Source of the DNA: Bugula neritina
Lineage: Eukaryota; Animalia; Bryozoa
DNA length: 64,000 nucleotides
NCBI GenBank assembly: GCA_964035545.1
Contig: OZ037773.1
Span: 3,625,751-3,689,750 of the forward strand
Reading direction: 5' to 3'
The position numbers and the translations under genes are program-made. The notes beneath the pieces were generated by a model. That model was not told the DNA's origin, made no database searches, and saw only the letters and a program-made list of their open reading frames with translations. Within the stretch, counting starts at the first letter, position 1; the number at the start of each line of letters is the position of its first letter. This document shows, in pieces, positions 6,901-10,730 of this stretch.

Positions 6901-9900
6901 GCACAGTGTGGCCCTAGGCTTAGTCAAAGGTGGGAAAAACTAGTTTAAATGTTCTCAAGTTTATAAAAGGCATTAGCATATTATTTATAATATATGAGTC
7001 CGGAGTCATTCTCTAATTAACCAATCGGCTTCCTTGTAGGTATGACAAACCAGAACGCCTTTCACTTGATGAGACGTGCTGACGACAGCAGTCTACCATG
7101 GCCAGGGATAATGTTTGGACTTACCATATCCAGTGTGTGGTACTGGTGTTCAGATCAGGTATGACTCTACTTTATACGAGTAGCCTAATGTACTTACTCA
7201 AGAAACTTACTTACTGTTAACAGCTGTACATGCCTTAGACATAACTTACCATAAAACACTTACTTTACAGATTTTAGCTTTATAGCTCTCGAACTTTTTC
7301 TTATAACGTCTTGGAGTCAAATTTGATTTGTATCTACAGCAAGTATAAGTTATAAAATTGCTATTTCTATTTAGTTTTGGTTTGACCATTGCTGCAGAAG
7401 TCAAATGGTAGTTACATTGAATACAATTTAAATTGTTTTCAACTATTTTGCCTATTGAGACGTGCTAATCATATTTACAACTCTTTTATTAACAGCGACC
7501 AAACATTCTAGAAAGTAGAGATACACATTTGTATTCTTGTTAGTATTTCCACACGGCTACCTGTGCAGAACTACTGCTGTCTAGGAGAAAAATGAGTATT
7601 CTTATGATCTTTATTACACTATTGTACCTCACTATTTTCTGCAGGTGATTGTACAAAGAGCACTCGCTGCAAAGAACCTAGTGCATGCCAAAGCAGGCAC
7701 AGTGCTTGCAGGTTCCCTCAAGCTGCTTCCTATGTTTATTATGGTATTTCCTGGAATGATATCAAGACTACTTTATCCAGGTATGTCTGACTTGTTTGTG
7801 TTAACATGTGGTACGTCAGTATATGATGTGTCAGCATGTGATGTGTCAGCATGTTATGTGTCAGCATGTTATGTGTCAGTATATGATGTGTCAGCATGTG
7901 ATGTGTCAGTATGTGATGTTTCAGTATATGATGTGCCAGCATGTTATGTGTCAGCATATTATGTGTCAGTATATGATGTGTCAGAGTGTCATGTTTCAGT
8001 ATATGATGTGTCAGCATGTTATGTGTCAGTATATGATGTGTCAGCATGTGATGTGTCAGTATGTGATGTTTCAGTATATGATGTGTCAGTATGTGATGTG
8101 TCAGTATATGATGTGTCAGCATGTGATGTTGACAAATTAATAAAGAGTATTCGATGGAGTCCGAGTATTTTTAAAAATCTACTTCAACTTTACAATATTT
8201 ACTTTTATTACAGAGCTCGTAGCTTGTGCAGATCCTGACAGTTGCAAGGAGATTTGTGGGAACCCTGCAGGATGTACCAACATAGCCTACCCCCTGCTGG
8301 TAGTGAAACTCATGCCAAACGGAGCCAGAGGTCTGATGCTGGCTGTGATGATGTCTGCATTGATGTCTTCACTAACTTCAATATTCAACAGTAGTTCTAC
8401 AATATTTACTATGGACATCTGGAGACGTCTGAGGAAAAACTCATCAGACATGGAGCTCATGATTGTCGGCAGGTGAAGACAGCTCTAATTTATTTTATCC
8501 ACTCATTGTGTAAGATAGCATACAGAGTGAAACATAACTGTAAATCTTGCTATATTTTAATTTAATTTCCTAAATATTCTTATGGCCAAAAGTTTATTAC
8601 TACAATGGATACGATTTGATATGTAGTCTTGATTGCTGGACCAATGAGCTAATGAAAGAAATGTTATTGCTATTTTTAGAGTTTTTGTGTTAGCGATTGT
8701 AGCAGTCAGTATAGCCTGGATTCCAATAATACAGAACATATCAGAGTTGTTTCACTACATACAAGGCATCACCTCCTTTCTCGCACCGCCAGTCTGCGCT
8801 GTCTACGTACTTGGTATTCTCTGGAAGCGAATCAACGAACAGGTATACTATATGCAAAAGCTTTATTATTTAATTCTAAGCACTATGGTTTCAGTGTGAT
8901 TTTAGTCATAATTTGCCATTTTACTCATTGATGGAATTATTTTGGTAAAATCTATTTTCTTATCTGGTTATTGTTATGATTTATAAAATTAACATTTAGT
9001 TGCAGCAACAACAAAATTTTAGTAGCTCAAGTTATTTTAATTTCTTAAAGAATTTTGGTTCAAGACACAAAAAAATGCATTATTTGTCATCTAAACCACA
9101 TGCTTTTCTCAATTTCTCCCTCACTTCAAAATTAAACAGCTCATCAATTACTTAAAATTGAACCTGTTATAAAGATGATGGCTTTATTTTTCAGGGTGCA
9201 TTTTGGGGGCTCATGGTTGGCCTAGTTGTTGGAATGGTCAGGTTTATATGGGAATTCAGCTATGGACCAGCGCCCCCTTGTGGTGAGGAAGATACTCGAC
9301 ACCCTCTGATCGCCAACGTCCACTACCTCCATTTTGGCATTCTGCTGTTTGGAATTGTTGTCATAGTAACCATCGTCATCAGCTTCCTCACTAAGCCAAT
9401 AGACGACAAGCATGTGAGTTCATTTCAATCGGCTCTAAGTTTCTAGAATGAAAAATAATTGCCCCCACCGGGAATTGAACCCGAGACCTCCGGCTTGCAA
9501 GCAAGTGTGCTAACCATTACACCACGGGGACATCTAGGTAAACACAACACTACATACCACTCAGTTCTCTGAACTCCACTGGCCTATCTACTACTCCTTA
9601 AGTCTTCAGGCTCCCCTAGCTACTCAACTCTCTTGAAGTACTACTACACTTCACTAAATGCCGAAATAGCTTGTAAAATAATTTTGCCCCCACTGGGAAT
9701 TGAACCCGAGACCTCTGGCTTGCAAGCAAGTGTGCTAACCATTACACCACGGGGACGACTGGGTAAACACATGACTACATAGAATAAGATGTGATAGGAA
9801 GTAGAAAAATAGTATTTTGAGTAGAGAAATGTGTCTGTAATTGAAATCTTTTGAACCAGATTTCAGGCAACTCTCGTTTTCATCTCCCTTGATCAGAAAA

Positions 9901-10730
9901 TCATATCTTACCTTAGCATGGAGGCTGACAATAGATTATTTTTATCAGCGTATTCATATTTGATGGTAAATTTGATTCTTAAGACATGGTAGTCTTCAAA
10001 CCTCCTTCATTTAAATTCTACTCAGCAATAAGCGAAAATACCTTTTTGATGACTCGAAACTTTTTAAGTTCTATACTGAGTAATGAGTATGCTATTAATA
10101 GAACGTTTTTATTAATAGCATACTCAGCATAATGTGTTACGTAATATTCTATGTATGAAAACTACTCAATTTGAATCTCACTTTTCAGTTGATTAGATTG
10201 ACTTTCCCATCACGATTTGAAGAAGGAGAGAGAGTAGATATTGGAGGAACAGAAAACACCAACTCTAAACCCAAAGTTGGTGTAAATGAGGAGGGATCAG
10301 TAATGCCCCTTACTGAAATAAATAACAAGGAAGAGGTTGATGTTCAAGAAGCAGACTTGGAAGGACAAGAAGACGTGACTGCTAGAAATGGTAAGTTAGA
10401 GTTATCTTCCCATTATAGCTGTGAGTTGAAGTTGCCTTTTCTTTATAGTGATGAGTTAGAGTTGCCCCCATTACAATTGTATTACACTTAACTATTACAT
10501 TATGTACTAATAATATACTTTATTTCACAGCCAGCTTCCCCTGGTATAAGAAAGCCATTTACTGGATTTGCGGAGTAGAGAATATGACATCATCATCTCA
10601 CGACAGCGACAAACCCGTTGAGGAAGCAGATATGAGCATAGATGAAGATCCACGCTGGTCAAGATGGACCAACTTTTCTGCTGTAGTGGTGATGATAGCC
10701 GCGGCATTTGTGTGGGGATTTTATGCCTAA
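989..10730 (+). CDS. SLC5A: Sodium/glucose (sodium/solute) cotransporter, SLC5 SGLT-like, tandem copy A; 5'-partial (exon 1 not in window)
   Basis: 14 in-frame GT-AG exons: 989-1057, 4121-4225, 4446-4505, 4720-4824, 5677-5782, 6174-6254, 6373-6516, 7040-7158, 7645-7780, 8214-8472, 8680-8842, 9195-9413, 10189-10390, 10531-10730 (TAA). SLC5 signatures: [84 protein letters not shown]-terminal FVWGFYA. Orthology within SLC5A1/2/4/9/10/11 not resolvable by eye. Confidence 0.95.
3838..3888. repeat. 19-bp tandem repeat x3
   Basis: CATTGCTGTGTTGCGATGT units. Confidence 0.8.
6575..6920. mobile_element. MITE with about 70-bp terminal inverted repeats
   Basis: AGCCTAGGGCCACAC..TTTTCGCATGCGAAA..CACAAGTAGCAAAGGTGTCCACTGTA at left, near-perfect reverse complement at about 6849-6920; flanked by TA (or TAA/TTA); not present in the paralog B intron. 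Confidence 0.9.
7817..8130. repeat. 15-bp minisatellite
   Basis: TCAGYATRTGATGTG, about 21 copies; source of the VSACD/HHILT/MMCQY ORFs. Confidence 0.95.
9460..9531 (-). pseudogene. tRNA-like sequence (Ala/TGC-like, defective anticodon arm) inside LTR
   Basis: Minus strand GTCCCCGTGGTGTAATGGTTAGCACACTTGCTTGCAAGCCGGAGGTCTCGGGTTCAATTCCCGGTGGGGGCA: 7-bp acceptor stem, D and T arms, A box TGGTGTAATGG, B box GGTTCAATTCC, followed by TTTTT; anticodon stem mismatched. Confidence 0.75.
9685..9756 (-). pseudogene. Second tRNA-like copy inside the other LTR
   Basis: Same 72-nt sequence with two substitutions; followed on the minus strand by AAATTATTTTACA. Confidence 0.75.

Follow-up and report, generated by a model that had tools for sequence, protein, structure and literature searches.

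A 331-bp element with tRNA-like long terminal repeats in Bugula neritina is one insertion of a dispersed Helenus/TRIMp3-type family

The window, a stretch of 64,000 nucleotides analysed as a whole, holds at 9449-9779 what looks like two tandem pseudo-tRNAs. The locus raises the question of whether these sequences arose by local duplication or are the two long terminal repeats (LTRs) of a single inserted retroelement and, if the latter, how so short an element would be transcribed, primed and mobilised. The sequence showed one insertion, in which two direct repeats of 106 and 108 bp, each bounded by TG..CA, flank a 117-bp interior and the whole is enclosed by a perfect target-site duplication (TSD), TAGAA, at the coordinates given by the original prediction. 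The features of the locus are as follows.

9444..9448, no strand: left TSD copy, TAGAA (from the sequence; a single TAGAA stands at the uninterrupted site in the X7 contig)
9780..9784, no strand: right TSD copy, TAGAA (from the sequence and the X7 contig)
9449..9554, minus strand: LTR of 106 bp, TG..CA, the 3' LTR in the tRNA sense
9672..9779, minus strand: LTR of 108 bp, TG..CA, the 5' LTR in the tRNA sense
9555..9671, minus strand: non-coding interior of 117 bp
9451..9455, minus strand: T5 run lying 2 nt in from the LTR end and reading A5 on the plus strand; candidate Pol III terminator and putative R/U5 boundary
9675..9678, minus strand: T4 run in the 5' LTR, 3 nt short of its end
9460..9531, minus strand: tRNA-like sequence of the 3' LTR, its anticodon arm defective (Rfam tRNA, 43.1 bits; ARAGORN, 9459-9532)
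9685..9756, minus strand: tRNA-like sequence of the 5' LTR (Rfam tRNA, 40.2 bits; ARAGORN)
9739-9749 and 9696-9706, minus strand: box A and box B, respectively, of the 5' LTR's tRNA-like sequence
near 9756, minus strand: predicted Pol III start
9555..9569, minus strand: polypurine-tract-like end of the interior, GAGAACTGAGTGGTA, adjoining the 3' LTR (9449-9554)
9660..9671, minus strand: candidate primer-binding site, AGCTATTTCGGC on the minus strand and GCCGAAATAGCT on the plus strand
9414..10188, plus strand: host intron (GT..AG) holding the insertion (spliced contigs from the RNA-labelled runs X8 and X9)

The element has a total length of 331 bp and is non-coding. Between its two LTRs, identity is 93% across 98 ungapped nt (90.7% with gaps counted), and an LTR 20-mer is present twice in the window where 0 occurrences are expected. 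Each LTR is composed of ~23 nt (TGTAGTG...), a 72-nt degenerate tRNA-like gene and ~10 nt ending in a T4-5 run and ACA. As predicted, the tRNA-like part accounts for about two thirds of each LTR (72 of 106-108 nt) and contains boxes A and B, which read TGGTGTAATGG and GGTTCAATTCC, respectively. Both LTRs score above the Rfam tRNA gathering score of 29 bits, and ARAGORN called both tRNA-like sequences with an abnormal anticodon loop. The interior holds only the 12-nt primer site at one end and the purine-rich tract at the other, the latter on the minus strand directly beside the 3' LTR, where it had been described. A reading of the plus strand as the element sense was rejected, as its interior end, TCCCACCCAGTTC.., matches no tRNA end and the opposite end forms a poor purine tract. 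The anatomy of the locus is confirmed as first described and is not a chance arrangement.

At this locus the repeat register runs 2-3 nt past TG..CA (TAG at 9444 and 9667, and TA after both CA), which resembles a 225-bp tandem duplication and would fit a SINE head or pseudo-tRNA that was duplicated locally, or two SINEs that inserted independently. However, a search of the same genome, in which a first look gave 1338 candidates, showed at least 40 full-length copies on all the large contigs, with 84-90% identity and the same three-part structure, and each locus has its own 5-bp TSD. Alignment of 30 copies showed one conserved LTR-interior-LTR plan, with LTRs of 105-108 bp and interiors of 116-123 bp. 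Perfect 5-bp TSDs were found in 20 of 28 full copies and a 4/5 match in 6 more, every sequence being different, whereas displaced 5-mers used as a control gave 0 perfect matches in the full copies. Solo LTRs are also present: 19 singletons have no interior nearby, are bounded by TG..CA and carry no A-rich or LINE-like tail. The TSD is perfect in 8 of these 19 and matches at 4/5 positions in 5 of the 19, with 0 controls matching at 4 or more. In addition, the site is empty in another sample. A DNA contig (X7, record 12) covers 9276-9449 and 9808-10382, skips the element and retains a single TAGAA. The copies, solo LTRs and empty site that the original prediction had proposed to look for are thus all present, and together they refute a local duplication of a SINE head, whose probability is negligible. 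The 331-bp element is a genuine dispersed transposable-element family.

The locus itself is one old insertion lying antisense to its host gene within an intron, at a site that is uninterrupted in the other sample. The junction between the flank and the LTR is spanned by a contig (X1), and spliced contigs (X8 and X9, RNA-labelled) join 9413 to 10189 and 8839 to 9192. Many copies of the family are intronic.

Comparisons within the family showed a mean LTR identity of 0.912 within a copy versus 0.878 between copies (Wilcoxon p=1e-4), indicating a single template for both LTRs of a copy. The LTR pairs of two copies are identical. One copy (L013) is nested in the LTR of another, with the TSD CCTGA. 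The polypurine-tract-like end reads ..GAGAACTGGGTGGGA in most copies and directly precedes TG, but it is only moderately purine-rich. Genome-wide, an LTR 23-mer has ~494 matches (0 for the reversed control) and an interior 23-mer has 119 (~120 interiors; control 0). In this genome, LTRs account for hundreds of 'tRNA pseudogenes'.

The class of the element is already known. The original prediction had supposed that the class might be described while the family was not, and this holds: the class is Helenus (TRIMp3), the tRNA-bearing TRIMs (Kojima 2024, Biology 13:119, PMC10886601), and none of five diagnostic motifs of the family is present in the consensus file of that study. The prediction had named Ajax as tRNA-bearing, which proved mistaken. 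Ajax, from nemerteans, shares with Cassandra of plants the idea of a Pol III small-RNA promoter placed in a TRIM LTR, but in both the promoter is derived from 5S rRNA rather than tRNA. The element resembles Helenus in its short LTRs with tRNA-derived sequence and boxes A and B, its short non-coding interior, its TSDs and its solo LTRs with TSDs. The primer site beside the 5' LTR also corresponds, as may the only moderately purine-rich tract beside the 3' LTR, and in neither does the tRNA-like part have the look of a working tRNA. The length of 331 bp falls in the Helenus range of 311-1263 bp (PMC10886601). Nevertheless, two features set it apart from animal Helenus, which have a 4-bp TSD wherever it was determined (one n.d.) and a tRNA 3'-end primer (Table S1 of PMC10886601). 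The TSD here is 5 bp, and the primer site is the complement of tRNA-Phe nt 1-12. Fungal Helenus have a 5-bp TSD and mostly an anticodon-loop primer, and Ajax has a 5-bp TSD like the family here but, unlike it, a tRNA-Leu 3'-end primer site (PMC10886601). A 5-bp TSD in an animal Helenus and a primer site matching a tRNA 5' end are new relative to that study, whose Helenus host list does not include Bryozoa. With this family, Helenus/TRIMp3 gains a TSD and a primer type that are new to it and, probably, a new phylum. SINE2 elements are likewise short, high in copy number and often intronic, and boxes A and B are found in their tRNA-like head as well. They have a single head, a LINE-related or A-rich tail and a TSD of variable length, whereas here the head is doubled as LTRs with TG..CA ends, the TSD is fixed at 5 bp, there are solo LTRs, a primer site and a candidate purine tract, and there is no tail.

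The retention of the tRNA-like signals bears on how the element would be transcribed. Box A is retained with at most one mismatch in 49 of 52 LTRs and box B in 47 of 52, and box B is also retained in a diverged subfamily (L051). A run of at least four T lies in the last 9 nt of 49 of the 52 LTRs, and 22 of 26 interiors have no T4 run on the tRNA-sense strand, although this is weakly informative. From these signals we infer transcription by Pol III, with the tRNA-like head acting as the internal promoter of the element. The genomic RNA would begin at ~9756 in the 5' LTR, pass a leaky T4 run and end at the T run within the 3' LTR, which would divide the LTR into a U3 of ~23 nt, an R of ~80 nt and a U5 of 3 nt. 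RNA-labelled Logan contigs cover the LTR and the interior at a high summed depth, in which all copies are pooled and DNA may be included. The start, end and strand of transcripts are not readable from such contigs, and only the host splice junctions were drawn on.

The T4-5 run of the 5' LTR lies ahead of the primer site, so most Pol III transcripts should stop before reaching the interior, and a full-length Pol III transcript needs read-through of the T4 run. Such a run, found in 49 of 52 LTRs and expected to stop Pol III early, fits a different account in which the TRIM is genuine while its tRNA-like head does not serve as a promoter, the RNA coming instead from Pol II through the short upstream part of the LTR or from host read-through. 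The tRNA-like part would then be carried along as a passenger, left by a SINE or tRNA that inserted long ago, or would have a different function, for example in packaging or chromatin. The intronic position of many copies, including the one at this locus, is in keeping with that account, and the use of Pol III is unproven for Helenus as well (PMC10886601). However, the ~23 nt upstream of the tRNA-like part leave little space for a Pol II promoter, and the retention of boxes A and B in nearly all LTRs, and of box B in the diverged subfamily, argues against this account. The T run also lies exactly where the R/U5 boundary is expected from Pol III termination, and the scarcity of T4 runs in the interiors is a weak further point. 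A head without promoter function thus appears unlikely, and Pol III remains the preferred source of the RNA.

The primer site is the most unusual feature of the element. The 12 nt directly after the 5' LTR are the exact complement (12/12) of nt 1-12 of the tRNA-Phe(GAA) of this genome, whose five genes start GCCGAAATAGCT. The site does not begin with TGG and is not the complement of the 3' end of a tRNA. The stretch that pairs lies at the very 5' end of the tRNA and stops in the D stem at U12. The same 12-mer lies directly after ..ACA in at least five other LTR families (A-E), in which it is invariant while the flanking sequences differ. The base following the 12-mer varies among the families, indicating that the match ends at nt 1 of the tRNA.

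Several of these families are coding. Among families A-E, the full element and the 5-bp TSD were read for family A, of which one copy (L043) is 5303 bp long, with identical 410-bp LTRs, an intact gag-pol and the TSD ATAAT. Its gag protein contains a zf-CCHC domain, and its pol has the order RT-RNase H-integrase. The Pfam RT and integrase matches of the family A pol lie below the curated cut-offs, and a PDB sequence search with pol gave weak retroviral-integrase matches only and no clade assignment; the pol may be Ty3/Gypsy in the broad sense or lie closer to the retroviruses. Families C and D encode proteins homologous to the pol and gag of family A; all three families have TGT..ACA ends, and the purine tract of family A reads ..GCTAGGGGAGA, followed by TG. 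LTR retrotransposons marked by the Pfam domain DUF7047 form a clade that occurs here, in Watersipora (a bryozoan) and in assemblies that carry arthropod and marine-metagenome labels. In a Watersipora homologue (L097), the LTR end ..TTACA is followed directly by AGCTATTTCGGC, and the TSD is 5 bp. A candidate hybrid of a TRIM-like LTR with a gag-like interior (L075) proved to be a degenerate, diverged relative without ORFs and is uninformative.

In a comparison of the TRIM with families A-E and with Watersipora, 15-23 nt proved to be shared, covering the end of the LTR together with the primer site and nothing else. The assignment of partners therefore rests on the primer signal and the 5-bp duplication, since no other sequence is common to the TRIM and the coding families. 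On this basis, the families that share the 12-mer are likely the mobilisers of the TRIM, and their gag-pol elements would supply reverse transcriptase and integrase in trans. The occurrence of one 12-nt site on a non-coding parasite and on several otherwise unrelated families, at least three of which have gag- or pol-like proteins, points to a shared unusual mode of priming. With it the primer site becomes a concrete means of matching a TRIM to its mobilisers, a problem that is open for Cassandra and TRIMs generally (PMC10886601). The original interpretation is supported overall, and the whole account of a Helenus/TRIMp3-type TRIM insertion with a putative Pol III head, a putative tRNA-Phe 5' primer and probable gag-pol mobilisers acting in trans is highly probable.

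The exact match suggests that minus-strand synthesis would be primed by the 5'-terminal 12-nt piece of tRNA-Phe (GCCGAAAUAGCU, with a 3' OH), cut after U12. Priming by such a fragment is what we infer from sequence complementarity, and literature searches on 5'-end tRNA priming found no description of it; a large 2026 survey was restricted to primer sites of the 3'-end type. The primer sites of the relatives consist of AGCTAT together with CTAGGC, CCCGGC or CACTAGGCC. A parent tRNA for these variant sites was not found: the pattern GCCKRGATAGCTCAG has one match in this genome, which is not a tRNA, and no tRNA gene here starts with it. Both results are in favour of a primer other than the tRNA-Phe 5' fragment, whether another RNA or, in the manner of Tf1, the 5' end of the element's own RNA, or of a signal with no role in priming. 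To our knowledge, no enzyme is documented as cutting a tRNA after nt 12, which counts on the same side. However, the site lies directly at the LTR end, the usual place of primer sites, and the exact 12/12 match to tRNA-Phe, stopping at nt 1, recurs in at least six unrelated families, invariant where all the flanking sequence is different. A BLAST comparison of the TRIM with the whole family A element, LTRs included, recovered the LTR end and primer site only; neither the 12-mer nor its complement turned up a second time. No complement of the 12-mer was seen by eye in the TRIM LTR either, and self-priming was set aside on these two results. The constant AGCTAT is moreover the complement of tRNA positions 7-12 (A-U-A-G-C-U), which are common to many tRNAs, and this argues against a non-tRNA reading. 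Taken together, a primer or function other than the tRNA-Phe fragment seems rather improbable, though less so than a head without promoter function.

Extending priming by a tRNA 5' fragment beyond this family is tentative. It is possible, though less likely than not, that the TRIM and the whole DUF7047-marked RT-RNase H-integrase clade prime from the first 12 nt of a tRNA whose D stem has been cut after U12. The tRNA would be tRNA-Phe in this genome, and the relatives would keep AGCTAT and change the acceptor-stem part only. If so, this would be a third mode of tRNA priming beside the 3'-end and anticodon-loop modes, and standard primer-site annotation would miss 5'-end sites because only tRNA 3' ends are examined. 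The self-primer of Tf1 is the first 11 nt of its own RNA, close to the 12-nt site here, and a tRNA-Phe 5' piece would act as a version in trans of that self-priming. Copia and Ty5 use as primer the 5' portion of tRNA-iMet, which is cut within the anticodon loop (PMC10886601). As in these three systems, the primer would not be the CCA 3' end of a tRNA, and a 5'-proximal RNA would need a cut to provide the 3' OH. Unlike in all three, the pairing here is with the extreme 5' end of a tRNA and stops at U12 in the D stem.

The original prediction described an insertion of two TG..CA-bounded repeats around an interior, flanked by a TAGAA target-site duplication (TSD), and this anatomy of the 331-bp element at 9449-9779 (the TRIM) is confirmed throughout in the window sequence:

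9444-9448, plus-strand reading: left copy of the TSD, TAGAA
9449-9554, plus-strand reading: LTR, TG...CA, 106 bp
9555-9671, plus-strand reading: interior, 117 bp
9672-9779, plus-strand reading: second LTR, TG...CA, 108 bp
9780-9784, plus-strand reading: right copy of the TSD, TAGAA

The two LTRs correspond to a direct repeat of 98 nt with 93% identity and a spacing of 225 bp found by the repeat finder, and their gapped alignment has an identity of 90.7%. On the minus strand, which is the tRNA sense, ARAGORN finds in each LTR one tRNA-like gene with an abnormal anticodon loop, and the Rfam tRNA model scores the two LTRs at 43.1 and 40.2 bits (gathering score 29), in agreement with the tRNA fold predicted for each. 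The Rfam alignment shows a deletion in both anticodon loops. Contigs of RNA-labelled runs splice from 8839 to 9192 and from 9413 to 10189 (GT..AG) on the plus strand, and thus the TRIM sits antisense within an intron of this host gene. In the region 8700-10388, these contigs give one exon ending at 8839, one at 9192-9413 that by eye resembles a membrane-transporter segment, and one beginning at 10189. The intron also contains a near-perfect 20-nt inverted repeat with a 3-nt spacer at 10084-10126 (TGAGTATGCTATTAATAGAA / TTTTATTAATAGCATACTCA), which has only sub-threshold miRNA-family matches in Rfam.

Contigs of public sequencing runs were aligned to positions 8700-10500 of the window. A single 764-nt contig of X7, a DNA-like run of another sample, aligns with 9276-9449 and 9808-10382 but lacks the element in between. 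At the junction (...TAGAAT-AAGATGT...), one TAGAA is followed by the right flank, showing the uninterrupted empty site. Divergence of this contig from the window in the intron is ~5-6%, indicating that its source is a diverged lineage or haplotype. A contig of another run, X1, extends from the left flank into the LTR.

The B. neritina genome (216 Mb, 321 contigs) was searched with the 331-bp unit. At least 40 full-length matches with identities of 84-90% are distributed on all large contigs (1338 first-look candidates), and these keep the LTR-interior-LTR structure. The 30 aligned copies share a single plan, in which the 5′ LTR, read in tRNA sense, comprises TGTAGTGTTGAGTTTACCCAGT, a 72-nt tRNA-like part and AATTATTTT(A/T)CA, followed by AGCTATTTCGGCC..., an interior of ~100 nt, ..GAGAACTGGGTGGGA and the repeated LTR. 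TSDs were scored after projecting the ends by alignment, with 5-mers displaced by 7 nt as the control. A perfect 5-bp TSD is present in 20 of 28 full copies and a 4-of-5 match in six more, compared with no perfect match in the control; the TSD sequences all differ. An LTR 23-mer has 494 genome matches at two or fewer mismatches and an interior 23-mer has 119 (0 for either reversed control), a ratio of ~4 that predicts solo LTRs. Solo LTRs are indeed present, as 19 of 20 singleton LTR matches are complete LTRs with no interior close by, carrying their own TSDs (eight perfect and five 4-of-5 matches among the 19; no control reached four of five).

The mean LTR identity is higher within copies than between copies (0.912 vs. 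0.878, Wilcoxon p=1e-4), as expected if one template regenerates both LTRs at each insertion, and two copies have identical LTR pairs. One full copy (L013, G000:C7:15192050-15195371) lies inverted within the LTR of another copy and is flanked by a perfect TSD (CCTGA). The TRIM has the integration signature of an LTR element, regenerates its LTRs and forms solo LTRs. A local duplication is excluded by the dispersed copies with TSDs, the solo LTRs and the empty site, and a SINE mobilised by a LINE is excluded as well. Alignment of L004, L020 and other copies showed two LTR sequence types, GGCCTCC...GG-TAGCAC...GGACTCGGG and GGTCCCC...GGTTAGCAC...GGTCTCGGG. Some copies have a 5′ LTR of one type and a 3′ LTR of the other, as would result if the template switched between co-packaged RNAs. 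A diverged relative of the LTR (~72% identity) with a longer upstream part is located at L075:1100-1514 (G000:C6:10316395-10319409); behind it lie a second LTR copy without most of the tRNA-like part, the same primer site and an ORF-less, gag-like interior, in that order.

The observation is real and was correctly interpreted, and the class is already published. Helenus, Ajax and plant Cassandra are grouped as TRIMp3 by Kojima 2024 (PMC10886601), in which Ajax is defined as the 5S rRNA counterpart of Helenus; the name Ajax, originally given for tRNA-bearing TRIMs, was therefore wrong, and Helenus is the correct one. Helenus elements of 311-1263 bp occur in fungi, one lycophyte and six animal phyla, and their primer site, purine tract and solo LTRs have been described (PMC10886601). 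The B. neritina TRIM meets the structural definition of Helenus. Five of its 12-16-nt motifs were not found in the consensus file of Kojima 2024, in line with the earlier reservation that the class may be known and the family not. The TRIM represents a new family that differs in two respects from the animal Helenus described to date: its TSD is 5 bp long, and its primer site matches a tRNA 5′ end. All animal Helenus families with a determined TSD have 4 bp (Helenus-1_MLe and one fish family, n.d.), and fungal and plant Helenus have 5 bp (Table S1, PMC10886601). Animal Helenus are assigned 3′-end tRNA primers and Gypsy partners, and fungal Helenus mostly anticodon-loop primers and Copia partners (Section 3.6, PMC10886601).

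In tRNA sense, the 5′ LTR is directly followed by the 12-nt sequence AGCTATTTCGGC (GCCGAAATAGCT at plus strand 9660-9671), and five tRNA-Phe(GAA) genes of the genome start with exactly GCCGAAATAGCT (ARAGORN). The site does not match the 3′ end of tRNA-Phe; it contains TTTCGGC of the 3′ acceptor strand in the same sense. When pattern searches were set up to exclude the TRIM itself, at least five other repeat families of the genome proved to have the same 12-mer immediately behind an LTR ending in ...ACA. The base after the 12-mer differs among families (A, T, G or C), and the ACA before it does not extend the complementarity into tRNA nt 13-15. Thus, the match comprises exactly nt 1-12 of tRNA-Phe, from the first base of the tRNA to the LTR edge. 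A literature search found no description of 5′-terminal tRNA priming; a 2026 survey, which examined 1512 metazoan elements for matches to tRNA 3′ ends only, assigned no primer site to 361 of them.

The TRIM shares its primer site with LTR families of the same genome, of which one has an intact gag-pol and two more have a homologous gag or pol. The family A copy (L043:797-6099, 5303 bp) has 100% identical 410-bp LTRs (TGTGG...GTAACA), a TSD ATAAT and a purine tract ..GCTAGGGGAGA. Its gag (355 aa) has a zf-CCHC and a weak Retrotrans_gag match, and its pol (1073 aa) contains RVT_1 (264-380), DUF7047, RVT_3 RNase H (521-599) and rve (743-830), an RT-RNase H-integrase order that is not that of Copia. 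The protease/RT start of family C is homologous to family A pol (E=7e-35), and family D gag to family A gag (E=5e-11). The LTR ends of families C and D (TGTAATGT...ACA) are closer to those of the TRIM (TGTAGTGT...TTACA) than those of family A. BLAST comparisons of the TRIM with these families showed only the LTR end and primer site in common (15-23 nt). Likely mobilisers of the TRIM are identifiable among these families, and those with gag-pol would supply its RT and integrase. The families with this primer site were found at loci L047-L076 (C at L054 and L076, for example, D at L056 and B at L061; also L074).

Among named sources, the nearest pol homologues come from the bryozoan Watersipora subatra, with 74% identity, and from an assembly that bears the label of the sea spider Nymphon striatum, with 71-75%; this would suit a bryozoan host. 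The Watersipora element (L097:2418-7455) has 324-bp LTRs of 99.4% identity, a TSD GATAT and the junction ..TTACA|AGCTATTTCGGC, and hence the primer site of the TRIM in another genus. Six further relatives (L098, L099 and L100-L103, from Nymphon and Petrolisthes assemblies and metagenome contigs) have AGCTATCACTAGGCC, AGCTATCTAGGC or AGCTATCCCGGC after ...ACA, several with legible 5-bp TSDs. The relatives' sites all keep AGCTAT, which is complementary to tRNA positions 7-12 (A-U-A-G-C-U), and differ in the part that would pair with the acceptor stem (CTAGGC, CCCGGC or CACTAGGCC after AGCTAT). No tRNA genes with 5′ ends matching these variants were found in the B. neritina genome. The Nymphon-labelled assembly has many such pol genes (P0011, P0013, P0015 and others), as close as those of Watersipora; the similarity may stem from epibionts contaminating the assembly, or from horizontal transfer.

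Judged from its sequence, the TRIM would be primed by a 5′ fragment of tRNA-Phe. The first 12 nt of the tRNA would anneal to the primer site, a cut after U12 would provide the 3′ OH, and plus-strand strong-stop synthesis would then copy the primer up to its 5′ end. Such priming would explain the exact length of 12 nt and its identity across unrelated families. One of the nearest precedents is Tf1, in which an 11-nt self-primer is cut by RNase H. The other is copia and Ty5, which use the 5′ part of tRNA-iMet as primer (cited in PMC10886601).

Transcription of the TRIM would be by Pol III, starting at the tRNA-like +1 of the 5′ LTR. Most initiations would end as an ~85-nt RNA, and the polymerase would pass the T4-5 run of the 5′ LTR at low frequency and stop at the corresponding run in the 3′ LTR, giving an RNA with a U3 of ~23 nt, an R of ~80 nt and ACA as U5. 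No T4 run is present in 22 of 26 TRIM interiors, which is weakly consistent with Pol III read-through, and box A, box B and the terminal T run are kept in 49, 47 and 49 of the 52 TRIM LTRs, respectively.
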